Below, piece after piece: positions 6,315 through 58,368 of a stretch of 64,000 nt of DNA (positions are counted from its first letter, which is position 1; each line of letters starts with the position of its first letter). Under the pieces are notes generated by a model. That model saw only the letters and a program-made list of their open reading frames with translations, did no database searches and had not been told where the DNA came from. The stretch spans positions 1-64,000 of the IMG/VR virus record IMGVR_UViG_3300030108_006260. One strand, 5' to 3'. The position numbers and the translations under genes are program-made.

Positions 6315-6317
6315 AGG

Positions 6318-13970: not shown

Positions 13971-13977
13971 TTAGTTC

Positions 13978-18394: not shown

Positions 18395-18404
18395 GAGGGG
18401 TGTT

Positions 18405-21857: not shown

Positions 21858-22132
21858 TAGGTAGATACCCCTAAAACCGAATAGTTATTCCAATAATCCC
21901 CAACGTACTCATCGTCAGGTATGACTCCTGCTATATACCCTTTGTGAATAGAAATGCCAGTTGACAACTCGATCACGTTGTTTTCTTCGAACACGACACG
22001 AGACAAGAAAACACCCTTGACTTCTTGAGAATCCGTTTCTCTAATCTTAAGTACAATGACCTTGTTTAGCAGAGGCCCATCGTAGGTCAAGGGAGGAAGT
22101 GTGTCAGCTGATTTATCTTGTAATTTTTCCAA
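21857..22132 (-). CDS. small hypothetical protein
   Basis: ORF coupled to neighbours. Confidence 0.55.
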   Translation of the reverse strand: MEKLQDKSADTLPPLTYDGPLLNKVIVLKIRETDSQEVKGVFLSRVVFEENNVIELSTGISIHKGYIAGVIPDDEYVGDYWNNYSVLGVST

Positions 22133-35770: not shown

Positions 35771-35995
35771 TCACCATCGTTTGCTGTACTCAAATCCCCC
35801 TGGGACACTACGCCATCCTAGAAGCTCCAAAGTCGCAACAACAGGCTCCGGGACTTCCTCGTCAACCGCCGCCCACACTGCGTCAGGACGGTATGTAATT
35901 GAAGCGTCTTCCGAGAAAGTGTGTACCAGGTCAAGACCCAGCGAGAGCGCCCTCAAGGAACTTACTTCATCCATGTAACGACCAGTGTGCCTCAT
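35771..35995 (-). CDS. small hypothetical protein
   Basis: ORF on the coding strand. Confidence 0.5.
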   Translation of the reverse strand: MRHTGRYMDEVSSLRALSLGLDLVHTFSEDASITYRPDAVWAAVDEEVPEPVVATLELLGWRSVPGGFEYSKRW

Positions 35996-36914
35996 GAAGT
36001 GCCACGCACAGATTCTTGATTTCTTCTGTGTTCGTTTCGTCAGGTAGGCTACTCTTCTTATAGAGGTCCTCTACTAAATCCTCAAGGCGGGAAGCTTCCT
36101 CCATAATCTCCTCGTATGTCTTAGACCCAAGACGAATTTCAATCAATTCTTCGGCATCTGGGCGTTTAGTAATAACTCCTTTGCCTTCCATGATTTCTGC
36201 ACACATTCTCATCAAGCGAATAAGGTGCATTCCGTTCTTAGTGTCGTATCCAAACTTGGATTCAAGCTTGGCCCTTGCTTCGTTTCGGTTTTTCTTCCAT
36301 CCCTGATACTGTTTCCACCTAGTAAGGGCTGAAGCGTACTCCTTTTCCCTCCGGACAGCCGTGGCTACCTCTGGTCCGAAGGTGTACCCCTGGGACTCTA
36401 GATCCTCAATGGCACCCATTGTAGTCTTGTCGATGACCTTACTTCCTGACTCTGGAAGTCCAAAATCAGAACGAAGAGGCTTACTCTTAGGAGGATTGCG
36501 TAGCCACTCGTAGTGTCCTCTCATCTTCTTCAACTGGGAGTGAGCGTATCCCATAAAACGAAATTTAGCCCTCTTTGATAGGAAGATGTCCCGTTTTTCG
36601 ATAAGGACTCTCCCTACAGGGGCGCACACAGTCCAGTCACTCTCTTCTGTATAGAGAAGCTCTACAATGTTGGGGTTACATTCAGACGCTAACTTAAGAA
36701 ACTTCTGTAGCGCAAAAATAGTCCTGTCATGATCATGTCCCCGGTTTACCTGTTCTTCGTGCTGGTCGAAGGAAAAAAACGGGTCTAGGATTACATCCTT
36801 AGGGGGAACGCAGACTCCCTTGAAGTCCACGTCAGAGCCTTCGATGTTGGTACCATAAGCCCTGCTTCCCGTGAGGCATTCGAACACTGTGTTCTTGGGT
36901 ACATCAAATCTCAT
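35967..36914 (-). CDS. Pol-beta superfamily nucleotidyltransferase (RlaP / T4 NrdC.11-like)
   Basis: LTGSRAYGTN...SDVDFKG, CNPNIVELL, GYDTKNGMHLIRL. Confidence 0.9.
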   Translation of the reverse strand: MRFDVPKNTVFECLTGSRAYGTNIEGSDVDFKGVCVPPKDVILDPFFSFDQHEEQVNRGHDHDRTIFALQKFLKLASECNPNIVELLYTEESDWTVCAPVGRVLIEKRDIFLSKRAKFRFMGYAHSQLKKMRGHYEWLRNPPKSKPLRSDFGLPESGSKVIDKTTMGAIEDLESQGYTFGPEVATAVRREKEYASALTRWKQYQGWKKNRNEARAKLESKFGYDTKNGMHLIRLMRMCAEIMEGKGVITKRPDAEELIEIRLGSKTYEEIMEEASRLEDLVEDLYKKSSLPDETNTEEIKNLCVALHEAHWSLHG

Positions 36915-45451: not shown

Positions 45452-45485
45452 AGAAACGGGGAAGCAGTCTCGCTTCCCCGTTTCT
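45452..45485 (-). terminator. intrinsic terminator closing the tRNA/ncRNA array
   Basis: 14-bp perfect stem agaaacggggaagc / gcttccccgtttct immediately after the last CCA. Confidence 0.75.
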
Positions 45486-45598
45486 GGACCCCTGCGCACG
45501 ATTCGAACGTGCAGCTCCCAGTAGATCAGTCTGGGCTCAGAACACTCAAAATACGCGCGTATCTATTGTGTTCCCTGTTTCCGTTACACCAGCAGGAG
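45485..45598 (-). ncRNA. tRNA-like RNA with expanded anticodon arm
   Basis: CTCCTGC/GCAGGGG acceptor + T + CCA; GCACG-TTCGAAT-CGTGC T arm; GAACAC/GTGTTC stem enclosing 22 nt including palindrome ATACGCGCGTAT; CCCAG/CTGGG variable arm. Confidence 0.75.
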
Positions 45599-45613
45599 AT
45601 TCTTTGTATTTGG

Positions 45614-45790
45614 TCAGAACATAGTCGGCTTTTTATTTCTAGCCTCATCTAGTTCTGTGGACCCCGAGCTGTCTGTGTACTCGATGATACTTCTATGTAC
45701 CTTTTCGTACCTAACGATCTTGATAAGTATATTGATACATACGGTACCAACAATACTTGCTAGTGTGACTTCAATGAGCCATTCGAGCAT
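45614..45790 (-). CDS. small membrane protein (58 aa) inside the RNA array
   Basis: MLEWLIEVTLASIVGTVCINILIKIVRYEK... read by hand. Confidence 0.55.
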   Translation of the reverse strand: MLEWLIEVTLASIVGTVCINILIKIVRYEKVHRSIIEYTDSSGSTELDEARNKKPTMF

Positions 45791-45820
45791 TATTTTTATA
45801 CCTTCAAAACCGAATCAAAT

Positions 45821-45894
45821 TGGTAGCGGAACCGGGATTCGAACCCGGAACCCAAGGTTATGAGCCTTGTGAGATGCCCTTTCTCTATTCCGCA
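45821..45894 (-). tRNA. tRNA-Met(CAT), initiator-like
   Basis: T1:T72 mismatch, CAAGG-CTCATAA-CCTTG anticodon arm, encoded ACCA. Confidence 0.88.
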
Positions 45895-45980
45895 TAAGTT
45901 ACTAGTCCCGAGGGTTTTGTTCCACACGCGCCTAGCAAGCGTGTACTATAGGCTTTAGGAACTCTTTGATAGTGCCCAGG

Positions 45981-46052
45981 AGCGAGAGACCGGGGTCGAA
46001 CCGGCAACGTCTAGCTTGGAAGGCTAGCATTCTGCCATTGAATTACTCTCGC
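45981..46052 (-). tRNA. tRNA-Gly(TCC)
   Basis: GCGAGAG/CTCTCGC acceptor, U73, CTAGC-CTTCCAA-GCTAG anticodon arm. Confidence 0.92.
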
Positions 46053-46057
46053 AAAAA

Positions 46058-46196
46058 AAGAAACCGAGGTAACAATCTGTGTAACATTTATGTTCATTTT
46101 CAAGATGAATGACTTTACCATTTGTCTACATCAGCTGGTAGCTGAAGACAGGATTCGAACCTGCAATTGCGTGTAAGATTGTTTGTAAGGTTTCTT
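46058..46196 (-). ncRNA. Y-RNA-like RNA with circularly permuted tRNA (T arm, closed acceptor, D arm, TGA anticodon arm)
   Basis: Outer stems AAGAAACC/GGTTTCTT and AACAATCT/AGATTGTT; inside GCAGG-TTCGAAT-CCTGT, CTTCAGC-TACCA-GCTGATG, GAC-AAATGGTAAA-GTC, TTCAT-CTTGAAA-ATGAA. Confidence 0.8.
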
Positions 46197-46198
46197 CT

Positions 46199-46334
46199 TG
46201 GCGGAGTTGACTGGAATCGAACCAGATTTGCTTGTAAGAACTGCGAAGTAGTCACTAGGTGACTGAGTAGAAGTTCTGGGAAAAATATGCTTTCTCTAAA
46301 ATGAAAGTGGGGAACCAATCCCCTGTTCAACTCC
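46199..46334 (-). ncRNA. tRNA-like RNA carrying the conserved module in its variable arm
   Basis: GGAGTTGA/TCAACTCC-G-CCA acceptor; GGGGA/TCCCC D-like stem; AGAACT/AGTTCT + AGTCAC/GTGACT module; CTTACAAGCA; CTGG-TTCGATT-CCAG. Confidence 0.75.
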
Positions 46335-46380
46335 TAATTTTGGAAATTTTTACATCTTATCCATGATGGTAATTAATTGC

Positions 46381-46506
46381 CACTAACTGAGTTATAAATC
46401 TGATTTTGATTTGCAGCGCAGGATTTGAACCTGCTACCTTCTGAGTTTCGGTCAGATGCTCTACCAAATGAGCTAGATGCGTGTAAGATTTATTTGTTAG
46501 TTAGTG
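46381..46506 (-). ncRNA. Y-RNA-like RNA enclosing a degenerate tRNA-Phe-like body (loop CCGAAAC)
   Basis: Outer stems CACTAACT/AGTTAGTG and ATAAATCT/AGATTTAT; CTTACACGCA; D, anticodon and T arms present; weak acceptor and no CCA. Confidence 0.75.
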
Positions 46507-46509
46507 ACT

Positions 46510-46639
46510 CGGCGGGGTGTCCTGGAATCGAACCAGATTGCTTGTAAGGATTTGTGGTTGGCCTCGGATGAGGCGAGGGAAAATCCTGTGAAATATCATT
46601 TCCAAATAATGATCGGAGGGCCACCCTCCTATACACCCC
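46510..46639 (-). ncRNA. tRNA-like RNA carrying the conserved module in its variable arm (sister of 46199-46334)
   Basis: GGGGTGT/ACACCCC-G-CCG; GGAGGG/CCCTCC; AGGATTT/AAATCCT + GCCTC/GAGGC; CTTACAAGCA; identical T arm CTGG-TTCGATT-CCAG. Confidence 0.75.
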
Positions 46640-46681
46640 AGGAAGACCTACAAAGTAGGTCATAAACCTAGTATACGAGAT

Positions 46682-46785
46682 TAAAAGCTGAGTTTTTGAT
46701 GTACAATGTAGGAATCGAACCTACTACATTAAGGTTAATAGCCTTACGCTCTATCCAATGAGCTAATTGTGCGTGTAAGCTTTTA
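46682..46785 (-). ncRNA. Y-RNA-like RNA enclosing a tRNA body with ATT anticodon
   Basis: TAAAAGCT/AGCTTTTA outer stem; CTTACACGCA; GCTC/GAGC D arm; TAAGG-CTATTAA-CCTTA; GTAGG-TTCGATT-CCTAC; no CCA. Confidence 0.75.
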
Positions 46786-46807
46786 TGTTTGTTTACTAGG
46801 TGGAGAG

Positions 46808-46835
46808 AGTTTAACACGCTCTCCGAAGTTGTCAA
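46808..46835 (-). promoter_or_regulatory. sigma70-type promoter driving the RNA array
   Basis: TTGACA, 16-nt spacer, extended -10 TGnTAAACT; T-tract upstream; array begins ~20 nt downstream. Confidence 0.75.
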
Positions 46836-46844
46836 GAAAAAAAG

Positions 46845-46997
46845 TTACTGTCCTTGTCTTTTTGTTCCGCAGTACCTTGACGTATGTGACTCCTCTTTGA
46901 GTCTTGTCCAGGTTGTGTTGCGATCTTTCTTTACAAGAGCAATCGCACTCTCAACTGCATTATGTGTGGATGTTTTATTTTCTTTTTCCGAAGTCAT
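46845..46997 (-). CDS. small basic protein (50 aa)
   Basis: MTSEKENKTSTHNAVESAIALVKK... read by hand; follows the ThiF stop. Confidence 0.45.
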   Translation of the reverse strand: MTSEKENKTSTHNAVESAIALVKKDRNTTWTRLKEESHTSRYCGTKRQGQ

Positions 46998-47002
46998 TTC
47001 TT

Positions 47003-47596
47003 TTAGTGAGACATAGCCCCGGCTGGATGAACAGTGTAACCTACCTTGACCCCGTCGTCAACAAATTTTTGAACAGAACGTGCAAGATAAGAAGAAGTGA
47101 TAGCGATAAAGGGGAGAAACTGCCCATCCTCGCAAGTAGCAGCGCCTTCCTGTGGTTCTGGATCGATAACAAAGTTCTCGCTCCAGACGATACGACCGAA
47201 ACTTCCTGCCCCGTCAAGGGCACCGTGAAGACAAGGAATCTCATCCTCACCTTCCTGGGGTCGACAGAAGTTCTGTACGACACTTCGTCCCTCCAGGTTA
47301 TCCAAGCAGTCTACAACAAGGTCAGCGTCGGACAAAAGCTCATAAACATTTTGGTCTGTCAACTTGTGGGGAACCACAGACAGCTTCGTACCAAAGACAA
47401 AGTTCATTGTCTGCTTTAGTCCCTGTACCTTACCTTTTCGTACGGAACCCTTAGAGTGAAACTGGGAGGCCACGTTCTTGGTCTCTACCTTGTCAAAATC
47501 AATAACGGTAAGATCGATGTCTAGGTTACGAATAAACTGAACAAGGTGAGATCCAAGGGCACCCACACCTACAACTACTACTTTCTTCTGAGACAT
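47003..47596 (-). CDS. E1-like ThiF/MoeB adenylating enzyme
   Basis: VVVVGVGALGS, VIDFDKVETKN, DLVVDCLDN; candidate catalytic Cys in GAATCEDG. Confidence 0.88.
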   Translation of the reverse strand: MSQKKVVVVGVGALGSHLVQFIRNLDIDLTVIDFDKVETKNVASQFHSKGSVRKGKVQGLKQTMNFVFGTKLSVVPHKLTDQNVYELLSDADLVVDCLDNLEGRSVVQNFCRPQEGEDEIPCLHGALDGAGSFGRIVWSENFVIDPEPQEGAATCEDGQFLPFIAITSSYLARSVQKFVDDGVKVGYTVHPAGAMSH

Positions 47597-47605
47597 TGTT
47601 CTCCT

Positions 47606-47845
47606 TTACTTAGACATATATGATAGAGCACGACGAGGAAACCTGTCAAAATAGCTAGACCACAACCAAATAGAAGTGATCATTCCAACCGGAACTCCTG
47701 TGTCAGTGTGAGCCCAGGTGTGACCACCGGAGCATACAGCTTCGTTCTGGGTAGTTCCGGCCGGCGTAATCTCCGTCCACCTCGCAAAGGTGCAGTCACC
47801 CGCATCCATAAAAATGAGGTCGCATCCTTTTGTATCTGTCTCCAT
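47606..47845 (-). CDS. small hypothetical protein
   Basis: ATG 5 nt downstream of a promoter motif. Confidence 0.6.
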   Translation of the reverse strand: METDTKGCDLIFMDAGDCTFARWTEITPAGTTQNEAVCSGGHTWAHTDTGVPVGMITSIWLWSSYFDRFPRRALSYMSK

Positions 47846-47850
47846 GTACC

Positions 47851-47868
47851 CTACTATGAGAAGGGTTA
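47851..47868 (-). promoter_or_regulatory. phage promoter-like motif copy
   Basis: ctactatgagaagggtta. Confidence 0.75.
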
Positions 47869-48633
47869 ACCTTTGGTCGACTCCAGGAGTTCTGTTACCT
47901 TTTCTAAGTCCGTTCCCTTGCGGTTAGCGTCCCCTGTTCCCCAGCATACCCTACATACATCGTAAGTCATGGCAGCACCACCAAGTCCTCCCCGCCATGT
48001 AGAAGTGGACCCATAAAGCATGGTACCCATACCAGCACAAGAAGGACAAGGAGTAACAACACCCCTCCATGCTAAAAACTCTCGAACAGTGAGGGTCTTA
48101 TCAAGTTCTACACTATTCCTTAGTTCCCACGCAGAAGTGAGTGGAACAGTAGGATCCTTCAAATTCGAAGGATAAGGGTCTTCATGGTTCCAACGAACAG
48201 ACTCACGGGTCCCTGTCTCATACCACTCAAAGTGGAGCATATGTGTAGAGTGACCCATAATGTCAGGTCTGGCCTTCTCAGGAGGAAGAACGGGCGATAC
48301 ATTTGCCAAATGCATACCTCTACGGAGGTAGGATCCTACTTCTAGTCCTCGAACCGGCTTGACCTCTCCATAGTTCAGAACACCACTAGCACCTTCAACA
48401 AGTACAGCCTGGGTGTAAAGCCAGTGTTCTTCTCCTGGTCCTCCAGTGAAGTCCTCTATGGCTACAACAATTCCATCCTCTGCTGCAAATACCCTGGACT
48501 TTCCCGTGACATAAATGTCTATTCCTTGATGGTAGTAATACGATCTCTTATGACCAAACACACCATATTCTGATGTAAGTCTTTCCTGATTTGTGAGATC
48601 TTCGGATTTAATGGGGAATGTCCACTGAGGCAT
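47866..48633 (-). CDS. M23-family peptidase with C-terminal CxxCxGxG zinc finger
   Basis: HQGIDI (HxxxD), NYGEV, HMLHFE (HxH); CPSCAGMG / CRVCWGTG. Confidence 0.8.
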   Translation of the reverse strand: MPQWTFPIKSEDLTNQERLTSEYGVFGHKRSYYYHQGIDIYVTGKSRVFAAEDGIVVAIEDFTGGPGEEHWLYTQAVLVEGASGVLNYGEVKPVRGLEVGSYLRRGMHLANVSPVLPPEKARPDIMGHSTHMLHFEWYETGTRESVRWNHEDPYPSNLKDPTVPLTSAWELRNSVELDKTLTVREFLAWRGVVTPCPSCAGMGTMLYGSTSTWRGGLGGAAMTYDVCRVCWGTGDANRKGTDLEKVTELLESTKG

Positions 48634-48639
48634 TAGGTG

Positions 48640-49134
48640 CTACTTGTCCGTTCGTTCGAAGTCAACGAACGAAACATCTGGTGTGTTTGCCTCTTTACGG
48701 GATACTTCTTGGAACTCAGGTGGAAGAGAAGGAAAGAAGGCATCTCCCTCTGCTTCACGGTCCACAGTAGTAAGGAAAACTTTTGTAACAAGGGGCAGTG
48801 CAGCGGAATATACTGTAGTTCCACCTATAATAAACGGCACATTTTCAGAATGCCTTTTAGCAAAAGAAAGCGCATAAGACAAGGTCTTAGCTGGAACACA
48901 CCCAGAGAACTCCCTAGTGCTAGAGAGAACAATGTTTATTCTTCCCGGAAGAGGACGTCCTATCAACTCATGTGTTTTTCTTCCCATGATGACAGGAGAT
49001 CCGGTAGTAAGCGCCTTGAACCTCTTCAGATCCTCAGGAATGTGCCAAGGTAGGCCAAACTTGCCCTGGCTGTTACCTATTACACCGTTACGTCCTACCG
49101 CTACAATTAGGTTTAGAGGCTGTAGCACTATCAA
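48640..49134 (-). CDS. folA: dihydrofolate reductase
   Basis: LIVAV..NGVIG, LPWHIPEDLKRFK, VIMGRKT, RPLPGRINIVLS, IIGG, GDAFFP. Confidence 0.95.
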   Translation of the reverse strand: MIVLQPLNLIVAVGRNGVIGNSQGKFGLPWHIPEDLKRFKALTTGSPVIMGRKTHELIGRPLPGRINIVLSSTREFSGCVPAKTLSYALSFAKRHSENVPFIIGGTTVYSAALPLVTKVFLTTVDREAEGDAFFPSLPPEFQEVSRKEANTPDVSFVDFERTDK

Positions 49135-49970
49135 TCGGACTCCTTGAGGGGTTTACCGTGACTGTCTACCTTTTCTCTCGACAAGTCTGATGACACTCTG
49201 TGCTCAAAAGAAAGGTCCCACTTCCTTCTCCGTTCCTTTTCTTCCCACATATCCGCAAGAAGGCTTTCGTTAGCTAGAAGGGAGTTATAGTAGTCCGCTC
49301 GGATCTGGGGTCCGGTTTCGTCCCACCTAAGAAGCTCAGATTCACGTTCCCAGTAGTCAAAATACCTCCGTTCCATAAAACGAAGTGACTGGGGTGATTC
49401 CTGATCTTCGCGATACTTTTTAATAGCGCAGAAGATACCTCCATGATGGTCCTCGTACTCGTCCCCACTATACCAGCTAGGATTAACACCTTCTAGGTAG
49501 GGTCGCAGCTTCTCTCCGAAGAAGGTGTACTGCCCATTGCGAGAGAACGAGGCGATTGGAGTGGCGTCGTACCCGTTATCTTCCGCACAAAAGCAAGAGA
49601 AAAGAGAGATAGCCTGATCGTTACAGGACCACCCAGCTCTATAATAGGGGCTGTTCCACCCATAAATAGAGTCTACCCTCTTAGTGTGGTCATACCCAAA
49701 GTAAAATCCTTTGATGGTCCTCGTATGACGGGTCCAGTCCGTACTAGGCCAATATCCCTCTTTATCGCATGTGACTGCAAAGAGAACGTTGTGAACAGCA
49801 TCCTCCGCTTCATCATTGTAATACTGGGATACACCAAGTGTAATAGAGTTTACTTCAGGGTACATCTCAAAGAAGTGGGACAAGTACACCTTGAAGGGCC
49901 CAGTAAGATAATCCGTTCGCATACGTGATGCTTCCTCTACGGAATACCTGTGGGTGTTACTATTAGTCAT
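49131..49970 (-). CDS. hypothetical protein, paralog of 4466-5269
   Basis: YLTGPFKVY...VSQYYNDEAEDAVH. Confidence 0.75.
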   Translation of the reverse strand: MTNSNTHRYSVEEASRMRTDYLTGPFKVYLSHFFEMYPEVNSITLGVSQYYNDEAEDAVHNVLFAVTCDKEGYWPSTDWTRHTRTIKGFYFGYDHTKRVDSIYGWNSPYYRAGWSCNDQAISLFSCFCAEDNGYDATPIASFSRNGQYTFFGEKLRPYLEGVNPSWYSGDEYEDHHGGIFCAIKKYREDQESPQSLRFMERRYFDYWERESELLRWDETGPQIRADYYNSLLANESLLADMWEEKERRRKWDLSFEHRVSSDLSREKVDSHGKPLKESD

Positions 49971-50000
49971 ATTAATACTAGTTAGGATTTAAGGGATAAG

Positions 50001-50025
50001 AAAAAAGGCTACCTAAACAGTAGCC
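50001..50025 (-). terminator. intrinsic terminator after the Ubl gene
   Basis: GGCTAC-TGTTTAG-GTAGCC followed by TTTTTT on the minus strand. Confidence 0.7.
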
Positions 50026-50030
50026 AGTTT

Positions 50031-50312
50031 TCAACCGAAAGGGGTCTTTGGACGAATGCTGAAGAGAGCGAAAGGTCGTCCTTCGCTCGGGGCAAAACGG
50101 TCCACAACGAAGTCGCTGAAGTCAGCGTTTTCGTCTGCTGCGATTCCCTGCACACTACCTGCGCTCACGGCTTCCGTTACCCACATGCGAATGTCAGCAT
50201 CCGATGCGTCCACAGAAACAGGCTGTGCCATGTCTCCGTTCTGTCCTGCCCAGGTCACGTTGACCCGTGCTTCATCGCTTAGAACTTCATAATTTGTTGC
50301 CTCTTCAGTCAT
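50031..50312 (-). CDS. putative ubiquitin-like (beta-grasp) protein
   Basis: 93 aa; beta-rich RVNVTW...; ends ...IRPKTPFG with free C-terminal Gly; GGAG SD; co-occurs with E1, JAB and E2-like genes. Confidence 0.65.
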   Translation of the reverse strand: MTEEATNYEVLSDEARVNVTWAGQNGDMAQPVSVDASDADIRMWVTEAVSAGSVQGIAADENADFSDFVVDRFAPSEGRPFALFSIRPKTPFG

Positions 50313-50339
50313 ATTTAACTCCTCTATTTTAAAACCAGA

Positions 50340-50864
50340 CTAGTGGTAAACTTTAGTCTTCTTATCATTGGGGTAAAAAGAATCAAGGTGACCAGAGTCA
50401 GTCCCTTCATTCGGTTCTTGTGGATCGAATGCCATTCGAAGAAGGGCAAACTCTTTCTTGGCTACCTTATAGCTTTCTTCTTTGATACTTCTCATGTAGG
50501 CTACAAGAACATCTCTATGGCGGGGGTAGAGGCAGAGACACCATATCCCACCTATGGCCTTTACAAACTGAGTCCTGCCAGATATTCGTACAGGGAGCTT
50601 TTCTAGGTAGGTAAGTAACTCGTTTGACTCCCTTAGGTTCCAACTGATCACCAGACCGTCTATCTCTACTTCTGTTCTCTTGTTGTTCGATAAAGTTGGT
50701 CCTACGTATCGCTCGAAAAATATAGTTTCGCATGGTTCTGAATGTGTCTCATCTCTATATTCTGGATACCGAGTGTCAAGGTCATCTACTAGGTCATCTT
50801 CCATCTCTTCTGGAGCTACATGGCCCCTCAGCATTGACCCTACTAAAAGTTTCTTCCATCCCAT
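50340..50864 (-). CDS. hypothetical protein
   Basis: ORF; start set at MGWKK. Confidence 0.6.
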   Translation of the reverse strand: MGWKKLLVGSMLRGHVAPEEMEDDLVDDLDTRYPEYRDETHSEPCETIFFERYVGPTLSNNKRTEVEIDGLVISWNLRESNELLTYLEKLPVRISGRTQFVKAIGGIWCLCLYPRHRDVLVAYMRSIKEESYKVAKKEFALLRMAFDPQEPNEGTDSGHLDSFYPNDKKTKVYH

Positions 50865-50938
50865 AACACTACCCCCAGTGTACAAACACTATCATAAAAA
50901 GGGTTCAGAAGCTAGTTAAAGATAGGAAAGAGGTCACA

Positions 50939-51211
50939 CTACTCATTTTCTAAACTTCTTACCGCGTACTCGCAGCGGTTCCACGCCTTATCACCCGTAT
51001 AAAGCGGAGACGTTAGGACAATGGGCGATAGAACACCATCCTGATAAGTCCAAAGAACATCTGTAACAATCACCAACTTATCCTCTAACCACACCTTTTC
51101 ATCTTGACGTGGGATGTCTCCTGAAAAATGTATAGTATTTCCGTTGGGTGTTTTTAGTATGTAAGTCATGCTTTTCCTAAGGAATAGTGGCTGAACAAAC
51201 GAGGGGCCCAT
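50939..51211 (-). CDS. small hypothetical protein
   Basis: ORF on the coding strand. Confidence 0.5.
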   Translation of the reverse strand: MGPSFVQPLFLRKSMTYILKTPNGNTIHFSGDIPRQDEKVWLEDKLVIVTDVLWTYQDGVLSPIVLTSPLYTGDKAWNRCEYAVRSLENE

Positions 51212-52080
51212 TCCTCTAATCTAGGCTCCACACTAGCAAGAAGGCTAATTTGCGTGGACATGTTTGACCCATCAATCTCTTCAGGGTCCATGTTATTGTC
51301 GATATACTTTAGCAGAGTAATACGACGCAAACTAGAGGTGTTACTAATGTATTCTGCTACTTCTGTCTCGGTAGCACACCAAGAATCAGAGTCACGGGAC
51401 TCTCGTAGCCTACGAACTACAGACCTGCAAGCCTGATCAATGAGAAGTGTGTCACTAACTACCCCCAGCTCCAGAATGGACATTCTCACGGAGGCAACAG
51501 AAGGGTACAGGACGTTACCGAAGTAGTCAAGGGCTTCCTTGATCATTTCCTCGTTCGAGGTAGACTCCAGTGAAATATTCGCTATTTTAAACCTCACTCC
51601 GGGAGTTACGGCTCTGTAGAAAGAAGCCTCCTCTTTGTAGCGATGTATGTCTATGGCGTACTTGTCATTATCCAGAATTATCCAATTAGGACTGTATTCT
51701 GTGTGCCACCCCCTAACAGTGTATGATAGAGTCCGCAGCTTATCCAGCCAAGAAAAGTCAGCACTAAAGGGAGTTGATTTCCAGGAGCCTGCGATCTTCC
51801 TGCATACAATGATGTCCGTCTCGGAACAGATCCACCACAACAAGGACCTTCCTAGCGCCTTCTCAATGGAATCAAATGTTTCAATGTCGATCGATGAAGG
51901 TGAGGGTATGCCTGAACCAGGATGACTATGAGCGAAACCAAGAACTTGGTCTCTGTTATCCCATATCTCACTCCACAGGTCTTGAGAATCAGGAAGGTAT
52001 ACGGCAGACCTTCCTTCTGGCAGGTGCCAGTAAATAGGCTTGTTGTCTAGTCCCACAAGGACCCCTGTTTCAATACTCAT
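51166..52080 (-). CDS. JAB/JAMM (MPN+) metalloisopeptidase with C-terminal extension
   Basis: N-terminal IETG (catalytic Glu); FAHSHPGSGIPSPSSID (HxH...SxxD). Confidence 0.85.
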   Translation of the reverse strand: MSIETGVLVGLDNKPIYWHLPEGRSAVYLPDSQDLWSEIWDNRDQVLGFAHSHPGSGIPSPSSIDIETFDSIEKALGRSLLWWICSETDIIVCRKIAGSWKSTPFSADFSWLDKLRTLSYTVRGWHTEYSPNWIILDNDKYAIDIHRYKEEASFYRAVTPGVRFKIANISLESTSNEEMIKEALDYFGNVLYPSVASVRMSILELGVVSDTLLIDQACRSVVRRLRESRDSDSWCATETEVAEYISNTSSLRRITLLKYIDNNMDPEEIDGSNMSTQISLLASVEPRLEEWAPRLFSHYSLGKA

Positions 52081-52384
52081 CTCCGCGCCGACTTTCTTCG
52101 TAAAATTTGTTATTCCTAACAAGTAACAAACGGTCTGCCTCCAGTTCGGCAACAACACCCCACCACCCAATAGACTGAGATCCACTGAGCCCTTTGAGGT
52201 AGTGGACACATCCATAACGGCCATAAGAATGGGTCGATAATGTCCTAATAACTGATAGTATTAGACCGGGGGTAGCTCCCGCCATCTTAAGAGCAGTCGT
52301 TACTGATATGCGCCATGTGTCTCTCTTGGACCCATAAAATATTTCAGATACCCATTCTGCTTGCTTGTCGGACAGACTATTCAT
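52070..52384 (-). CDS. hypothetical protein
   Basis: ORF; start set at MNSLSDKQ. Confidence 0.55.
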   Translation of the reverse strand: MNSLSDKQAEWVSEIFYGSKRDTWRISVTTALKMAGATPGLILSVIRTLSTHSYGRYGCVHYLKGLSGSQSIGWWGVVAELEADRLLLVRNNKFYEESRRGDEY

Positions 52385-52592
52385 CCGAGTACCACTTGAA
52401 GGGAATATCATCCGTAACATTAAGCACATAGTGCTCTAGAGAGGAATAGTCCGCAGTTTTTAATGGAGTACCTCTCGACGTGTCTGACATAAGATCTCTA
52501 ACACGCTTACCAAGAGAAGTACGTATAGGAATGTTATGAAGAGGAATCTTGGAAAAGGAAATACGCCCTGTTATAGTTCTAGACTTTTTCAT
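52377..52592 (-). CDS. miniature protein resembling a family-A DNA polymerase fragment
   Basis: TITGRISFSKIPLHNIPIRTSLGKRVR and KTADYSSLEH parallel PolA TxTGRLSS..PNLQNIPIR and motif A ADYSQIELR. Confidence 0.65.
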   Translation of the reverse strand: MKKSRTITGRISFSKIPLHNIPIRTSLGKRVRDLMSDTSRGTPLKTADYSSLEHYVLNVTDDIPFKWYSDE

Positions 52593-52806
52593 CTATGATT
52601 TCCTGTAGAGACTCATCAGACAGAACCACTGTCAGATTAAAGTAACTCAAAGGGCACTCCCTGATGTCTTCTAGGAGGATCTCCTGTATCATGCTCATGA
52701 CTTCAGCCTTTCCTCCCTCCCTGTAAGCCTCACGAATGTCGTCACTGCTGACATTGATAAGGTCTTCGGTCTGCTTTATCTTAAAATCGATTATTACGTC
52801 ACTCAT
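52579..52806 (-). CDS. small acidic protein
   Basis: ORF on the coding strand. Confidence 0.6.
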   Translation of the reverse strand: MSDVIIDFKIKQTEDLINVSSDDIREAYREGGKAEVMSMIQEILLEDIRECPLSYFNLTVVLSDESLQEIIDEKV

Positions 52807-53221
52807 TTCTTAGTCTACCCCTTGGGAATCCAGTCATTTTCTCTACAACTCCAGTGTAATGTGCACCATAGCTTATTTTGAGGATGGAGCCGTCACAGAA
52901 GCAAATAGAAATGTTACGATTGTTCTCTACTATGGTGTCAACTGCGGATAAGTTGATACAGACTCTCTTTCCTGACTCATGTAGATAAACACTGTGGAAT
53001 CCCGGAAGGGTCTTGAGAAGTAGCACCCCGTTTTTTGAAAGACGAACGCTTCCCTTCTTATGACGTAGCATATAGAATAAAGAATCCTTTAGTGGTTCTG
53101 GTTCCTCCGCATAAAGGATAGAGTCTGTTCGCAGGGCCATCCTGGAAACGTTGCCCCCATTTGAATAGGTCTCCACATATACAAAAGAATTTTTATTCAT
53201 AAGTCCTACCAGTGGCGCCAA
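52799..53221 (-). CDS. hypothetical protein
   Basis: ORF on the coding strand. Confidence 0.55.
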   Translation of the reverse strand: MAPLVGLMNKNSFVYVETYSNGGNVSRMALRTDSILYAEEPEPLKDSLFYMLRHKKGSVRLSKNGVLLLKTLPGFHSVYLHESGKRVCINLSAVDTIVENNRNISICFCDGSILKISYGAHYTGVVEKMTGFPRGRLRNE

Positions 53222-54141
53222 ATAACGGCACCCTCAGAAACTGCTTCTCTCACAACGCCTGGAAGGGATTCCAAAGTAAAATAGCTGTCCCCTCGCTCTC
53301 CCGTTGTTTCGCTCGTCAAGCACACACCTGCTTCTACGATGGACAAGTCCTCTCTGCAAACACATTCGTACCTTCCTCCGTTCAGGGTATATCTTACAAC
53401 GTACTCTCCGTTACCAGTTCGTCTGTGCTCCACATAAGAAGCGCCGCCGATAGAAAGGGAAGACCTTGCAGCAGTCTCAAAGTCTACCTGTGCCAGCCTC
53501 CTACGTGTAAGACCGTCCCCAAGGGATGTACGAACTTGTTCTTCCAATGCAGCCCGTTCTTGCGCTCTTCGTTGTCTCTCTTCCTCTTGTGCCCTAGCCC
53601 TTTCCGCTTCCTCTCGAATACGTCGCTGTTCTTCCCGGCGAGCACAGGCAAGGCGAAAGCATAGGTCAAGGGCCGGAGTAACTTCCTTTACTTCCCGTAG
53701 AGAGTCCTTGTCTTCAAGGTAGGCTTCTCGAACTTCGTCCTCGGGACCAAGGGGAAAAGAAAGTCCTCCGTAAAAAAGAGGACCGTTAGTCCAGTAGCGG
53801 TGAGCAGATACCCGCTCAAAGTGGTCTAGGTGGTCCATGAGATGAAGACGTGGAAATCTACCTGCCATTTCCTGCGGCGTGGAGATGTTTCCGCCTTGAC
53901 TGTCTGAGACAAAAAGGTCACCTACTGCGTACCCACAAATCTCTTCTGTAGGGACCCCTTCATCTGACTCTTCCTTAAGACGGGCAGTCCGGCTGTCGAT
54001 TGTCCACTCATACATGCCTGCTTCGGAGGGAAGAGGACCCTTAATTTTCCAGGATCTGGATCCATAAAATAGCCTACGCCCACCCAGCCATGGAGTGACA
54101 ATAGTCTCATCAGGTTTTTGAAGCAGGTCTTTCCAGCTCAT
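53206..54141 (-). CDS. putative E2/UBC-like conjugating protein with N-terminal domain and coiled coil
   Basis: C-terminal ...LSIVEAGVCLTS... resembles the E2 GxICL catalytic motif, followed by TLESLPGVV helix; context with E1, Ubl and JAB. Confidence 0.55.
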   Translation of the reverse strand: MSWKDLLQKPDETIVTPWLGGRRLFYGSRSWKIKGPLPSEAGMYEWTIDSRTARLKEESDEGVPTEEICGYAVGDLFVSDSQGGNISTPQEMAGRFPRLHLMDHLDHFERVSAHRYWTNGPLFYGGLSFPLGPEDEVREAYLEDKDSLREVKEVTPALDLCFRLACARREEQRRIREEAERARAQEEERQRRAQERAALEEQVRTSLGDGLTRRRLAQVDFETAARSSLSIGGASYVEHRRTGNGEYVVRYTLNGGRYECVCREDLSIVEAGVCLTSETTGERGDSYFTLESLPGVVREAVSEGAVIWRHW

Positions 54142-54146
54142 GGTGA

Positions 54147-54164
54147 TTAGTATGTGAAGGGTTT
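54147..54164 (-). promoter_or_regulatory. phage promoter-like motif variant
   Basis: ttagtatgtgaagggttt, 5 nt upstream of the ATG at 54141. Confidence 0.6.
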
Positions 54165-54202
54165 CCACGTGATAAAAGTCAATTTTTCTTTAAAAAGAAA
54201 TG

Positions 54203-54232
54203 TTGACTTGGAAAATATGATGTTCATATTCT
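54203..54232 (+). promoter_or_regulatory. sigma70-type promoter with overlapping inverted repeat for hsp20
   Basis: TTGACT at 54203; AATATGA-tgt-TCATATT inverted repeat at 54214-54230 over the spacer and -10. Confidence 0.6.
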
Positions 54233-54271
54233 AGTAAAGTCACCAAGACTTAAAAATATAGGAGATAACAT

Positions 54272-54667
54272 ATGCTAACTTTGCGTGACCCGTTTGCAGA
54301 TTTTCCCTCTTTATTCTCTTCTCGCGTACATGGAACAAATGGCACAGCTGATAGATGGTCTCCTCCTCTAGACATAGTTGAGGATGATACCACGATCCAT
54401 ATCAGTATGGAAGTTCCGGGAATGTCGCTTTCTGACCTTCAGGTGGAGGTAGGATCCGGAGTCATCACTATTTCAGGAGAGAAAAAGAAATCTACTATTA
54501 AGGCTCATAGGGTAGAAAGCCGTAGCGGAAAGTTCGTTAGGGCATTACGTCTACCCAAGGACGCAAACGTAGATGAAATAGAGGCAGACCTATCCCAAGG
54601 AATTTTGACTATATCAATACCAAGGAGTATACCTAAAAAAACCCTAATAAAAATAGGTGAAAAGTAA
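54272..54667 (+). CDS. small heat-shock protein Hsp20 / alpha-crystallin
   Basis: WSPPLDIVE...MEVPG...VITISGEK...HRVE.R.GKF.R...LP...A.L..GILTI.IP. Confidence 0.95.
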   Translation: MLTLRDPFADFPSLFSSRVHGTNGTADRWSPPLDIVEDDTTIHISMEVPGMSLSDLQVEVGSGVITISGEKKKSTIKAHRVESRSGKFVRALRLPKDANVDEIEADLSQGILTISIPRSIPKKTLIKIGEK

Positions 54668-54668
54668 T

Positions 54669-54699
54669 AAAAATGGAGGGGCAAGTCCCCTCCATTTTT
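54669..54699. terminator. bidirectional intrinsic terminator
   Basis: aaaaatggagggg-caagt-cccctccattttt between convergent genes. Confidence 0.85.
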
Positions 54700-54701
54700 A
54701 T

Positions 54702-55208
54702 TTAACGAAGGTCAAAAAGGTAGAGAGTAGTTGCCCAGGAAGAAGAAAGGACATTTGGTGGCTCCTCCTCAGCTTCAAGCTCGTCACTAGACTCAATTGC
54801 TGAGTCTAGAAATCTCTTAGCGTGGAAGTACGCTTCTAGGAGTGGCCGGGTGTGGAAAGACCAGTTATTGTTGTGCTCCATCTTAAAAGAGACACCCGTA
54901 CCCTCAGACACTATTGACATAAATAGAGAGTTCATTTCCCTGTCAGGCAGAAGTGACTGGAGAGCAGAAACTATATCCTTCGTCCATTCCTGGATTCTGT
55001 ATACCTTGAAGGAGTTATGGTAGAACCTATAAAATAGGTCTGCTTCTCCCCATTCGCTCTCTACAGAGGACTTGATCTTCCTAAGATCGTCGACCTTGCT
55101 TGTAACTGCTTTGAACAGAGAAGTCTCTAAATACTTTCTAGATTCCCCGTCAAGGTGCTCTTCGGTGTAATCAAAGACAAGGGTCTCGTCTTCTTCACGT
55201 TCCGCCAT
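54702..55208 (-). CDS. hypothetical protein
   Basis: ORF; start set at MAEREED. Confidence 0.65.
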   Translation of the reverse strand: MAEREEDETLVFDYTEEHLDGESRKYLETSLFKAVTSKVDDLRKIKSSVESEWGEADLFYRFYHNSFKVYRIQEWTKDIVSALQSLLPDREMNSLFMSIVSEGTGVSFKMEHNNNWSFHTRPLLEAYFHAKRFLDSAIESSDELEAEEEPPNVLSSSWATTLYLFDLR

Positions 55209-55283
55209 TATTGTTTTTATTCTTCCAAATTTTAGGTAAAATGAAGATAGGGGAGGGTGCAAAATGTCACCATCCCCTATCTA

Positions 55284-57140
55284 TCAACTAGCAGTAATAG
55301 CCCAGGCAGGCTTCTTCAGTAGGTCGGTCTGTAGGATCTGGTCAACGAGCATAACCCGAGGGGTACGCGCTCCCTGAGAAGACACGCCAACAGGAGTGGA
55401 GGCAATAAGGTTGTGTAGGGTTCGCGGAACCTGGTACGGATCACTAAACACTGACTGCTCAACCTCAAAGCAAGGAATCTCCAGACTAGCTGCTGTCTCC
55501 GTCACGCAGTGACGCCAAGAACTTCCTACCTTAAGAAGACCAAAAGCCACAGGGTTCAATCCTGACTGTTGAACTGCACGAGGGAAGTTAGCAGCACCCT
55601 CATCACCTACGAAGATGAACAGTGCATCCTCATCTGCGCTAGGAGGGTACTTGGAAAGAAGACGAACGCCAGTAGCGTAATCGGTTCCTCCTCCGGCGCC
55701 ATACCCACGGAAGGCGGCACGTACACCTGCGTGGGAAGCATGCTGGATCTTGATCTCACGTGCTACCGTGTTGAAAACACACACGTGAACTCTGTCCAAT
55801 GGGAATGCCTGAACAAAGTTTTCCAGACATGCCTTTGCTTCATCCAGGGACTGCTGCATAGACCCCGAGATGTCTACGAAGAAGTAGATGCGCATGTTGC
55901 GGGAAACTTCTTCCACCTTCTTCTGTAGGGCAGCGTCTGCGCCTTCCTTCAGAACCTCGACAACTTCTCGTCCCTTTACGTTACGAGCAATGTTACGGGA
56001 ACGTTGGTCTTCTGCTGCACGGACTGCTGAACTCCACCGTTCCTTGATATCCTGTACCTCCAAGAGTCCAAGAGTCTCAAGGGTAGGAGTAGCAATAACA
56101 AGGTCCTTGTCAGACAAACACCCTGACTCAATGGCAGCAGCCATGACTGCGCGGGTAACACCAACCGATACAGGAACACGTGAAGTGATGACCTTGTAGG
56201 AAGGCTTCTCGGAAACAATCTTCTGACAGATCTGTTCCTCCGTTAGATCGTCCCAGGAGTCCTGCTTCTGAATCTGGACACCAAGAGCAACCTCTCGGCG
56301 ACCGTCAGGAGCTTGCTTCTGCTTCCAACGAAGAATCTGAAAGAAGTTTTCCCCTTCGGGCTTGTACCCGATGATCTGAGAGAGTCGAATAACACTCTTA
56401 CGGAAACCAGCCTTGACAAGACCCTGTAGAACAGGAGGATTCTGCTCGCGGAACCGCAACCACTTCTCTACAGCCTTGGGCCAGCGACCCAAGAAAGGGT
56501 TACGATTAGATCGACCAAATCCGAGCTGACGGTTGACCTCTGCAACACCGTCCTGAATGAGGACCTCACGGACACGAAGTAGCATCTTCGGGTTGAAGTC
56601 ACGTCGTTCCGAGCGTAGAAGTAGCATAGCCTCTCCCACGTCACGGTAGTCCTCGTCGTAGAAGAGAACTTCACCGTTCTCTACCTCAGGGTCTCCCTTT
56701 CGGGACTGGCACAGCAAGAAGGCAGCAAGAATAACCTTAAGGTCGCGATGCTCCTGGCCAAACGCATAGGAGGCCCATCGTGCAGCAAACTCATTGTCCA
56801 TTCGCCACAACTCTGCCACCTGGTTATACATCCAGTGAGCAACCTCAGGAAAGATTCCTGCTGGACGGTACTGTGCGACTACACTACGACCTTCCGTGAT
56901 AGATCCATCCTCCCCAAGAACACCTACACGAGTGCGGGTGACACGGCGGCCACTCTTAGAGAGAGCGTAGACAATCTTCTGCCCGTTCTCTTCTTTGTGG
57001 GTTACAGGGGACCAGGAAACGCCGATACGTGTGCGTCCGTCTTGCTTTACCATTCCTGGACGGTTGTGGTAAAGGTGGTCGGTATGACTTAGAAGCGACT
57101 GTAGAATTACCTCAGCCGGTCCCTTACTTTCTTGTTCCAT
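55284..57140 (-). CDS. TROVE/Ro60-like helical domain plus C-terminal vWA domain
   Basis: Clear MIDAS FFVDISGSM, GGGTDY, FVGDE; helical N-region with DNEFAARWASYA, GRWPKAVEKW, IRLSQ..YKP recalling Ro60 blocks (fold inferred). Confidence 0.65.
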   Translation of the reverse strand: MEQESKGPAEVILQSLLSHTDHLYHNRPGMVKQDGRTRIGVSWSPVTHKEENGQKIVYALSKSGRRVTRTRVGVLGEDGSITEGRSVVAQYRPAGIFPEVAHWMYNQVAELWRMDNEFAARWASYAFGQEHRDLKVILAAFLLCQSRKGDPEVENGEVLFYDEDYRDVGEAMLLLRSERRDFNPKMLLRVREVLIQDGVAEVNRQLGFGRSNRNPFLGRWPKAVEKWLRFREQNPPVLQGLVKAGFRKSVIRLSQIIGYKPEGENFFQILRWKQKQAPDGRREVALGVQIQKQDSWDDLTEEQICQKIVSEKPSYKVITSRVPVSVGVTRAVMAAAIESGCLSDKDLVIATPTLETLGLLEVQDIKERWSSAVRAAEDQRSRNIARNVKGREVVEVLKEGADAALQKKVEEVSRNMRIYFFVDISGSMQQSLDEAKACLENFVQAFPLDRVHVCVFNTVAREIKIQHASHAGVRAAFRGYGAGGGTDYATGVRLLSKYPPSADEDALFIFVGDEGAANFPRAVQQSGLNPVAFGLLKVGSSWRHCVTETAASLEIPCFEVEQSVFSDPYQVPRTLHNLIASTPVGVSSQGARTPRVMLVDQILQTDLLKKPAWAITAS

Positions 57141-57210
57141 TACACTAATACTTTCCGAGACGAGTAGAGGGTTACTCTTGTTGTCTCTGTGAGCCTATAA
57201 ATAAAGAGGG

Positions 57211-57282
57211 CGGACCCGGTAGGATTCGAACCTACGACCGTTGGTTTAGAAGACCACTGCTCTTCCTCTGAGCTACGGATCC
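57211..57282 (-). tRNA. tRNA-Arg(TCT)
   Basis: GGATCCGTAGCTCAGAGGAAGAGC...TGGT-CTTCTAA-ACCA...GGTTCGAATCC. Confidence 0.92.
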
Positions 57283-57320
57283 AAAATGGAGCACAAGACT
57301 AGCAGGGGCTCCGTGGGAAG

Positions 57321-58293: not shown

Positions 58294-58368
58294 TGGCAGT
58301 CCCGGTAGGATTCGAACCTACGACCTTCGGCTTAGGAAGCCGCTGCTCTTCCTCTGAGCTACGAGACC
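58294..58368 (-). tRNA. tRNA-Arg(CCT)
   Basis: GGTCTCGTAGCTCAGAGGAAGAGC...CGGC-TTCCTAA-GCCG...GGTTCGAATCC...GCCA. Confidence 0.92.

Follow-up and report, generated by a model that had tools for sequence, protein, structure and literature searches.

The 64,000-nucleotide stretch analyzed here (the window: positions 1 to 64,000 of IMG/VR virus record IMGVR_UViG_3300030108_006260) carries on its minus strand, between positions 57140 and 45452, genes for a 618-aa von Willebrand factor A (vWA) protein, a 320-aa protein that we call p320, a JAB/JAMM metalloprotease, a ubiquitin-like protein (Ubl) and an E1-like adenylyltransferase of the ThiF type, followed by an array of tRNA-like RNAs. We compared all proteins of the window by tblastn with 72 related loci (68 viral loci fetched with the vWA protein and four obtained by exact look-up; ~1.41 Mb of sequence). 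Only these five genes travel together, in the fixed order vWA, p320, JAB, Ubl and ThiF; they were found in 62 to 67 of the 72 loci, and the loci without them have incomplete sequence. The vWA protein is accompanied by the JAB, the Ubl, the E1 and RNAs that share a common helical element, the handle, in essentially every related locus with enough sequence. A preliminary description of the window had proposed a single system made of a Ro60-like ribonucleoprotein (RNP), tRNA-mimic RNAs and Ubl tagging. The order and strand that it gave for the vWA, JAB, Ubl and E1 genes and the RNA array are correct; p320, whose conservation equals that of the other cassette genes, had been overlooked.

The 618-aa protein (55284-57140; minus strand, as for every feature below unless noted) is predicted to comprise a beta domain (residues ~29-92), a helical TROVE-like region (~98-413) and a C-terminal vWA domain with an intact metal-ion-dependent adhesion site (MIDAS). 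The vWA assignment, made in the preliminary description, is clear: the protein matches VWA_2 in Pfam at 1.7e-8, and the MIDAS residues D423, S425, S427, T486 and D513 are invariant among 46 homologues. Blocks reminiscent of Ro60 had also been seen in the N-terminal region, and structure prediction bears this out at the level of the fold, while no sequence method reaches TROVE. With an AlphaFold2 model (predicted local distance difference test score, pLDDT, 79.7), the top seven Foldseek matches in the PDB were all Ro60/TROVE (E 4.6e-8 to 5e-6, 525-563 aligned columns); the entries matched (9kop, 1yvp, 9nep, 9l5y, 2i91 and 1yvr) include Xenopus Ro60, a Thermus phage Ro60 and a "Trove domain" entry. 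Matches other than Ro60 were restricted to the vWA domain, so that only Ro60/TROVE structures aligned the N-terminal region. The full-length matches in the viral structure library BFVD were a phage TROVE protein and a DUF2828 protein, and TROVE clusters made up 58 of the 100 nearest atlas clusters. The N-terminal beta domain is extra relative to Ro60. The likeness to Ro60 rests on predicted structure, and since the template-modeling (TM) scores stay below 0.5, we call the protein a very distant, predicted TROVE-like protein and not a member of the Ro60 family. Of the candidates scored, more than 1,400 are homologues at E ≤ 0.001; the exhaustive profile search, run on 1.84 billion representatives, gave 704 representative clusters.

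The gene that follows, p320 (53206-54168), stands after the vWA gene in 67 of the 72 loci and recurs in distant clades. In its AlphaFold2 model (pLDDT 90.6), a helix of 50 residues stands between a beta-rich N domain and a C domain of alpha-beta4-alpha type, in which C269 and C283 are invariant. We looked for a known fold and rejected the candidates: Foldseek gave nothing in the PDB at E < 0.08, with weak OB/S1 and double-stranded RNA-binding domain hints only, and neither Pfam (44 members) nor a PDB profile search gave a match. With an invariant Cys after a four-stranded sheet, the modeled C domain could be a cryptic E2. The E2-like gene that the preliminary description had included in the ordered set is a different one, of 186 aa (54702-55262), and we reject that reading because the protein matches nothing in Pfam, PHROGs, PADLOC, NCBIfam or PDB sequences and is present in only 2 of the 72 loci.

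The three remaining genes hold the identities first given to them. The JAB/JAMM metalloprotease (51166-52224) has JAMM residues E52, H99, H101, S110 and D113, invariant among 67 homologues. At 352 aa, the copy in the window is long for a family with a median of 135 aa, and its C-terminal extension of ~190 aa has no family match. The Ubl (50031-50312; 93 aa, ending ...RPKTPFG) was recognized as a beta-grasp protein by atlas structure search, where its neighbors are the beta-grasp domains PB1, FERM F1, BilA_UBL and DUF348. Its C-terminal K-T-P-F-G is conserved, and behind G93, which 65 of 66 homologues have, comes a variable tail of 0-4 residues, an arrangement known from Ubl precursors. The E1-like protein (47003-47596) is a minimal, 197-aa adenylyltransferase of the ThiF/MoeB/UbaA type (ThiF, 1.6e-21) with an invariant GxGxxG motif and an invariant C155 (62 of 62). 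Its closest named relatives are ThiF, MoeB, the SAMP-activating UbaA and the tRNA-modifying TcdA, all with NCBIfam scores far below the family cut-offs, and the PADLOC E1-E2 models match only its adenylation domain. Bil/Bub-type sets likewise combine a JAB with a Gly-terminated Ubl and an E1 bearing a conserved Cys; they also have an E2, and none was found here. PADLOC found no CD-NTase with the cassette, and neither PADLOC nor NCBIfam recognized a system in it.

This gene set could also be read as a sulfur relay, in which a ThiS/MoaD/TtuB-type Ubl, activated by the ThiF-like protein and unmasked by the JAB (compare CysO/Mec+ and QbsE/QbsD), would supply sulfur to thiolate the adjacent tRNA-like RNAs or tRNAs, with the vWA protein and p320 as RNA-holding scaffolds. 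Urm1/Uba4, SAMP2/UbaA and TtuB/TtuC all serve tRNA thiolation, and the relatives of the E1, its invariant C155, the lack of an E2 and the canonical T loops of the tRNA-like RNAs fit such a relay. The Ubl, however, ends in Phe-Gly and not in the Gly-Gly of ThiS/MoaD-type proteins, and family searches found no sulfurtransferase or thiolase (rhodanese, cysteine desulfurase or PP-loop enzyme of the TtuA/Ncs6 type) among the conserved genes, besides the low NCBIfam scores. We regard the relay as unlikely. The Phe-Gly terminus, together with the lack of a sulfurtransferase or thiolase in the cassette, leads us to prefer, mildly, conjugation of the Ubl over sulfur carriage as judged from the sequences.

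Downstream of the E1 gene lies the RNA region. A promoter-like site (TTGACA, 16 nt, TAAACT, with an upstream TG; 10 of 12 matches) is predicted at 46808-46835, ~170 nt past the E1 stop, in agreement with the earlier placement of E1 just upstream of an RNA promoter; similar sites occur near the ThiF stop in 11 of 53 loci and in 0 of 53 control stretches. Five units that carry the handle follow, in three topologies that we call classes A, P and C. U1 (46682-46785, class C) reads handle strand and UACACGC, tRNA-like body, CAG, handle strand and CUCG, its body enclosed by a helix of 8 bp. U2 (46510-46639, class A; 86 bits) has an open 7-bp acceptor, a D arm, an anticodon-like arm (AUUUGGA), a two-part variable arm that bears the handle, a T arm and a GCC tail. 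U3 (46394-46493, class C) combines a tRNA-like body with C33, a poorly paired acceptor and an 8-bp closing handle helix, and U4 (46199-46333, class A; 110 bits) has an 8-nt anticodon-like loop and a GCCA tail. U5 (46071-46183, class P) presents a handle strand and UACACGC, a T arm, an acceptor hairpin with ..CCA in its loop, a D arm, an anticodon-like arm, CAG, a handle strand and CUCG, which is the topology of YrlA. U2 and U4 are the only strong matches of the class A covariance model across the 64 kb, and in both class C units the 8-bp helix between leader and trailer is kept in minimum-free-energy folding.

Two standard-looking tRNAs, tRNA-Gly(UCC) (45979-46052) and tRNA-Met(CAU) (45821-45894), then lie between the promoter-like site and the terminator, with a weak extra promoter-like match at 45818-45789. 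A further tRNA-like RNA, U6 (45489-45601; z-score -2.3), has no handle; it combines a 7-bp acceptor, a canonical T arm, a UCCA tail and two internal hairpins, is set off from the array by tRNA-Met and a 58-aa open reading frame (45614-45790), and is not matched by the class A model. Its membership in the system is uncertain. One of its hairpins is palindromic (AUACGCGCGUAU), and it stands directly before a strong, intrinsic-type, terminator-like hairpin of 15 pairs (45452-45485) that closes the RNA region 1.35 kb past the promoter-like site. Degenerate copies of the handle motif also occur between array units, at 46181-46190 (-) and ~45930-45940 (-) (CCUUACAAAC; GUACACGC). Rfam returned only tRNA matches on the array at E ≤ 1. 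We considered transfer-messenger RNA for the long tRNA-like RNAs and rejected it, since they are too short, receive no such call from ARAGORN and contain no tag reading frame.

The array with its CUUACA motif, described before as a set of interchangeable modules, is real and far beyond chance. Across the related loci, the gene strand has 233 copies of C-Y-Y-A-C-A-N-G-C, concentrated immediately behind ThiF, and the opposite strand 59; the units that carry the motif were classed by the sequence after it. All classes have the handle, a helix that varies in sequence: CAG stands before its first strand and (A)CUCG behind it, and UACA(A/C)GCA comes after its second strand. The handle forms the variable arm in class A and closes the molecule in classes P and C. 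Class A RNAs (111-146 nt) have an open 7-bp acceptor, D, anticodon-like and T arms, a 12-bp acceptor/T branch, a tail of discriminator and CCA or CUA, and a long, two-part variable arm of ~45-60 nt with conserved motifs foreign to tRNA. RNAalifold recovered all arms from a plain MAFFT alignment of 42 copies, with compensatory changes in 26 of 28 pairs. The covariance model gave 173 matches at E ≤ 0.01 in 58 sources, all but three on the cassette strand, and about 125 are strong copies from 58 sources. Among the best 150 matches, 90% of the cells are paired, against 55% in shuffles and at most 51% with slid partners, and the covariation score of 0.78 (against 0.20) was reached by none of 500 shuffles. 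Of these 150 matches, 103 are found at most 3 kb downstream of ThiF, and another 23 precede the vWA gene by no more than 3 kb.

A class P or class C unit typically follows ~60 nt after a class A unit. Class P (24 units) is a circular permutation of class A, with the motif, the T arm, the 3' acceptor strand, a loop often consisting of NCCA plus a few bases, the 5' acceptor strand, the D arm and the anticodon-like arm in this order; its acceptor hairpins have 7 bp, with NCCA in the loop. In class C a tRNA body comes straight after the motif; these bodies are called as tRNA, often with C33 or A34 and with an unpaired acceptor. In the test of the permuted units, closing helices of at least 7 bp were found in 62%, against 15% of shuffles, and CAG-N5-11-CUCG keeps a constant offset in 21 of 24 class P and 19 of 28 class C units, with no instance in the control stretches. 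Permuted tRNA genes as such are ruled out as the full explanation, because the permuted units retain the shared handle motifs and the closing helix. The label "Y-like" that the array had been given is reasonable for the permuted class, which has the topology of YrlA. No YrlA match is above threshold: the single one, over the tRNA-like core of a class P unit in locus L016, scores 28 bits in Rfam (RF02553; gathering threshold 69, E 0.068). The array of that same locus also contains, just after the class P unit, a bacterial small signal recognition particle RNA (L016 15913-16005; Rfam 57.7 bits, gathering threshold 40).

Could these RNAs be translational adaptors, allo-tRNA-like or tRNA-Ser-derived molecules that recode or mistranslate and that the proteins mature, charge or protect? 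Class A has the 12-bp acceptor/T branch, the D, anticodon and T arms, the long variable arm and the NCCA or NCUA tails expected of such adaptors, and allo-tRNAs with long variable arms and 35 anticodons exist, some of them active in translation (PMC5389517). In locus L095 (13858-14434, a contig of a Polyangiaceae metagenome-assembled genome, MAG), three ordinary-looking class II tRNA-Ser genes (UGA, CGA and GGA) stand in the places of class A units, and a class P or C unit comes after each of them, which points to a possible origin of class A from tRNA-Ser through expansion of the variable arm. The loops speak against decoding. In the 125 best class A copies, 90 anticodon-like loops have 7 nt, of which only 49 (54%) have U33, and 25 (20%) have 8 nt, while the "anticodons" are diverse (GUA 10, UUG 8, UCC 8, GUU 7, CAU 6 and others). 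Class A RNAs are thus not ordinary decoders, and ARAGORN and the Rfam tRNA model leave them uncalled. Their acceptor/T composition is 7/5 in 29 of 45 and clearly 8/4 in only 4, which sets them apart from allo-tRNAs, and the non-tRNA motifs of the variable arm, the permutation of class P and the often unpaired acceptor of class C also tell against adaptors, a role that we consider quite improbable. The diversity of the anticodon-like loops is compatible with tRNA mimicry and no proof of it.

Some individual tRNA calls bear on the same subject. ARAGORN reports a tRNA-Asn(AUU) within U1 (46700-46772, -) and a tRNA-Asp(AUC) in locus L003 (14814-14886). A34 anticodons are unusual for Asn and Asp tRNAs in bacteria, and since both are class C units with the handle motif in front, they probably mimic tRNAs and do not decode. 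ARAGORN also calls two tRNAs with four-base anticodons in a related huge phage (UCAA and UCUA; L001 537-604 and 608-681).

The protein genes keep company over a wide range of spacings. The cassette spans from 4.0 kb, where the genes are contiguous (loci L036, L038, L042 and L049), to 11.6 kb, owing to differing insertions. The window holds an expanded form of 10.1 kb, with all cassette genes on the minus strand, and the interval is not a tight operon, since non-conserved genes interrupt it: Hsp20 on the other strand, dihydrofolate reductase, an M23 peptidase and several ORFans, none of them kept beside the vWA gene in other loci. No related locus has the Hsp20 gene (54272-54667, +), which is inserted between those for the vWA protein and p320; in this part of the window, no other gene on the plus strand has a significant family match.

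The window comes from a huge phage. Its long open reading frames are all on the minus strand, its G+C content is ~47%, and ten tRNA matches are spread across the 64 kb; a 240-kb IMG/VR viral contig encodes a protein identical to the 618-aa protein, contigs of relatives reach 619 kb, and megablast found no match for the region among GenBank phages. Identical DNA is present in at least 10 marine metagenome runs; being DNA, these corroborate the sequence and nothing more. A scan of one genome per prokaryotic species added 24 loci with the cassette and its RNAs, nearly all on Myxococcota MAG contigs (G+C 0.56-0.74), so that the phages are probably myxobacterial. The cassette also stands on a chromosome: in the isolate Paraliomyxa miuraensis SMH-27-4, a 799-kb contig carries the five genes amid those for a tetratricopeptide-repeat Ser/Thr kinase, a YcaO protein, a cytochrome P450, a tryptophan halogenase and a transposase. 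Right after ThiF, this contig has a promoter, TTGACA-17-TAAGCT, and then one class C RNA, whose acceptor is unpaired and whose closing helix has 8 bp. This chromosomal cassette with its RNA argues that the genes and the RNA behave as a unit outside phages.

More distant relatives of the vWA protein, found in the exhaustive profile search, are 519-574 aa long, have no N-terminal beta domain and lie on contigs of different phages. A p320 homologue is present in all four distant clades with sequence downstream of the vWA gene (hidden Markov model E 3e-15 to 6e-8; hhalign for L098). JAB and ThiF were detected only in L098 and L102, and not in L100 and L101, within ~3.6 kb downstream. In L099, L102 and L104, the vWA-like gene has class A RNAs close by on its upstream side. 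One distant clade, that of L100, has a gene for an RlaP-family RNA-repair nucleotidyltransferase (5899-6669) and a DUF5662 gene, both placed after the vWA-like gene and before the p320-like gene. In L102, a PTH2 peptidyl-tRNA hydrolase gene lies upstream of the cassette, and a 226-aa protein, whose gene (13324-14004) overlaps the ThiF start, ends in ...KGGVE, that is, Gly-Gly and two residues; by sequence, it might replace the small Ubl that was not detected there.

These distributions also bear on a plainer reading, two unrelated syntenic modules, in which a Ro60-like protein with its RNAs and a Ubl/E1/JAB set with a separate task (modification of a virion or tail protein, for example) would merely have been inherited together. 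Most loci do come from one lineage, the Ubl was not detected in the distant clades, neither ThiF nor JAB was found within 3.6 kb in L100, and unrelated genes insert freely between the five genes. Yet order and presence survive many different insertions, the five genes and an RNA stand isolated in a bacterial chromosome, ThiF and JAB accompany the vWA protein and p320 in two distant clades, and in most loci the RNA array abuts ThiF and not the vWA gene. Two independent modules seem decidedly unlikely to us.

The reading we prefer, tentatively and with somewhat less than even confidence, is that of a self-contained mobile cassette, widespread in huge Myxococcota-associated phages, in which a Ro60-type RNP with handle RNAs would act in tRNA-centered conflict and would be joined by an E2-less Ubl arm. 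Given the parts, their conservation, the RNA structures and their co-localization, we infer how protein and RNA may bind, what the Ubl may target and what role would follow. As Ro60 binds the stem of Y RNA, the TROVE-like protein, perhaps with p320, would dock on the handle, and the interchangeable tRNA-like bodies would engage factors that recognize tRNA, either host anticodon nucleases or enzymes of tRNA repair, processing or modification. The RNP would then serve in conflict over tRNA or in its quality control during infection, as a decoy, a sensor or a platform for repair and processing. A role in such conflict is plausible because phages counter tRNA-cutting defenses with tRNAs of their own (PMC10264068, PMC11555353). 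As for the Ubl arm, the JAB would trim the Ubl to its terminal Gly, the E1 would activate it, and it would be attached without a canonical E2 to a component or client of the RNP, which would thereby be regulated or marked. With no E2 found, this arm resembles the archaeal SAMP/UbaA and Thermus TtuB/TtuC systems. SAMP/UbaA/JAMM1 and TtuB/TtuC are E2-independent, and they conjugate proteins or carry sulfur for tRNA thiolation.

Several observations weigh against this proposal. For the protein, the Ro60 matches have TM-scores of 0.31-0.48 and root-mean-square deviations of 8-13 Å, so that a Ro60 ring geometry is only putative. Pfam TROVE (the Ro60 family combines PF05731 with vWA_Ro60, PF25045) has no match in the protein or in 10 distant relatives; PDB phmmer and profile searches gave generic vWA matches and no Ro60; and hhalign against an alignment of 30 Ro60 sequences, gathered from mycobacteriophage Bxz1 gp220, reached a probability of 31% (E 5e-4, 99 columns), a weak match that runs colinearly from the last part of the helical region into the beginning of the vWA domain. 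For the RNAs, the YrlA model has no match above threshold, and none at E ≤ 1 in the window array; the Ro-binding motif of YrlA, GNCGAAN0-1G, is not evident in the class P alignment, where the 5' region reads ..CU-UACA(A/C)GCA. The array gave no signal in the one metatranscriptome from a sample that contains the phage. For the Ubl arm, no conserved cassette gene matches E2 families by Pfam, PDB profile or Foldseek, and the undetected Ubl of the distant clades means that the arm may be accessory. Most loci, moreover, belong to one phage lineage (vWA protein identity 47-68%), so that part of the synteny is inherited and not independently maintained. Altogether, the single-system idea of the preliminary description survives the refuting observations that it had named itself, given the TROVE-like fold, the company that the JAB, Ubl, E1 and RNAs keep with the vWA protein and the isolated chromosomal cassette. 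It loses its E2, whose candidate fails in phylogenetic profiling, and it had left p320 out; the Ubl was not detected in the distant clades. The mechanism offered with it, RNAs that bait tRNA nucleases and a coupling of this to Ubl conjugation, is conjectural.

A bolder variant would make the RNAs protein-charged tRNA mimics. The E1 would activate the Gly of the Ubl as an aminoacyl-tRNA synthetase does an amino acid, and the acyl group would be passed to the NCCA 3' end of handle RNAs held by the Ro60-like protein and p320, for delivery to ribosomes or tRNA-directed enzymes. The acceptor end is open in class A, and in class P cleavage by RNase P would open it. We rate this as highly improbable. 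Its weaker form would see the cassette as a programmable set of decoys or sensors, each RNA mimicking a tRNA that host nucleases target.

Other genes of the window may be placed beside these. An RlaP-family RNA-repair nucleotidyltransferase gene lies at 35967-36914 (-); together with the RlaP gene inside the cassette of the L100 clade, it lends contextual support to the reading we prefer. The window also carries a second, unrelated vWA protein of 450 aa (23780-25132, -) and two R2K-clade ATP-grasp proteins (17237-18499, -, and 22113-22907, -), as well as genes for a GMP reductase/IMP dehydrogenase, a thymidylate synthase, a dihydrofolate reductase and a DnaJ-domain protein. Directly upstream of the vWA gene is tRNA-Arg(UCU) (57208-57283, -), with tRNA-Arg(CCU) (58294-58368, -) ~1 kb beyond; in several relatives, tRNAs or class A RNAs likewise lie immediately upstream of that gene.

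Ro60/Y RNA particles are conserved from bacteria to humans, and the logic of their effectors is still unclear. A Ro60-type protein tied genetically to a Ubl activation set and to modular tRNA mimics suggests a link between RNA surveillance and Ubl chemistry. The same handle on three topologies, one of them a natural circular permutation, would be a useful model for RNA modularity, and handle RNAs may account for part of the large "tRNA" complement reported in huge phages. The cassette of cultured Paraliomyxa miuraensis makes these questions directly testable.

Separately, each ingredient is already known: jumbo-phage TROVE proteins with tRNA-like partners (PMC7824862, PMC4201824), bacterial Ubl/E1/JAB sets and allo-tRNA polycistrons. 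The structure of a phage Ro60 is known as well (PMC12135203), and a preprint on Asgard viruses reports Ro60 and ThiF genes in one virus, not linked to each other. The preliminary description knew of no described example of the whole architecture, and our searches of the literature on TROVE/Ro60 with Ubl, JAB, ThiF or phage likewise turned up no description of the cassette, of p320 or of a handle RNA family with three topologies.

With Ro60/YrlA the cassette shares a helical solenoid, predicted here, a MIDAS vWA domain and tRNA-like non-coding RNAs on the same strand within a few kilobases. Class P has the order of YrlA (5' strand, T arm, acceptor hairpin, D arm, 3' strand), its 7-bp hairpin and its NCCA loop; in Mycobacterium smegmatis, the 7-bp acceptor hairpin of YrlA is where RNase P cuts, after which CCA is added (Chen et al. 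2014, PMC4201824). The cassette protein differs in having no TROVE detectable by sequence and an extra N-terminal beta domain, and the RNAs differ in their handle motifs (CAG, CUCG and UACAMGC against the GNCGAA of YrlA), in their three topologies and in coming often as arrays of 2-6. The cassette is, further, obligately linked to p320, JAB and ThiF, and in the main clade to the Ubl, whereas we saw no linkage to RtcB or PNPase.

The Ubl arm has its counterparts in SAMP/UbaA/JAMM1, TtuB/TtuC, Bil/Bub and CBASS Cap2/Cap3, which share a JAB, a ThiF-type E1 that has a conserved Cys, and a beta-grasp Ubl whose C-terminal Gly is either free or hidden behind a short tail; SAMP and TtuB are in addition tied to tRNA through thiolation. 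In the cassette, the terminus is Phe-Gly instead of Gly-Gly and there is no thiolase or sulfurtransferase; unlike Bil/Bub and Cap2 systems, it has no detected E2, and unlike CBASS, no CD-NTase. For none of these four systems did we find a description of a Ubl set linked to an RNP and non-coding RNAs.

Among tRNA-like RNAs, the closest to class A are the allo-tRNAs, irregular tRNAs in polycistrons with long variable arms and 35 anticodons, some of which are active in translation (Mukai et al. 2017, PMC5389517). Both have a long variable arm, in some copies a tRNA-Sec-like D arm, diverse anticodons, polycistronic arrangement and a doubtful role in translation. Class A is mostly 7/5 where allo-tRNAs are 8/4 or 9/3, its variable arm is much longer, in two parts and with conserved motifs, and it keeps company with the permuted and helix-closed RNAs and with a fixed set of protein genes. 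Phage tRNAs that escape host defenses or replace the tRNAs cut by them (PMC10264068, PMC11555353) are likewise phage-encoded with altered anticodon loops, and the commonest triplets in class A include GUA, GUU and CAU. Those, however, are functional tRNAs that act alone, whereas the cassette RNAs, often with an 8-nt loop or without U33, come with a handle and with dedicated proteins.

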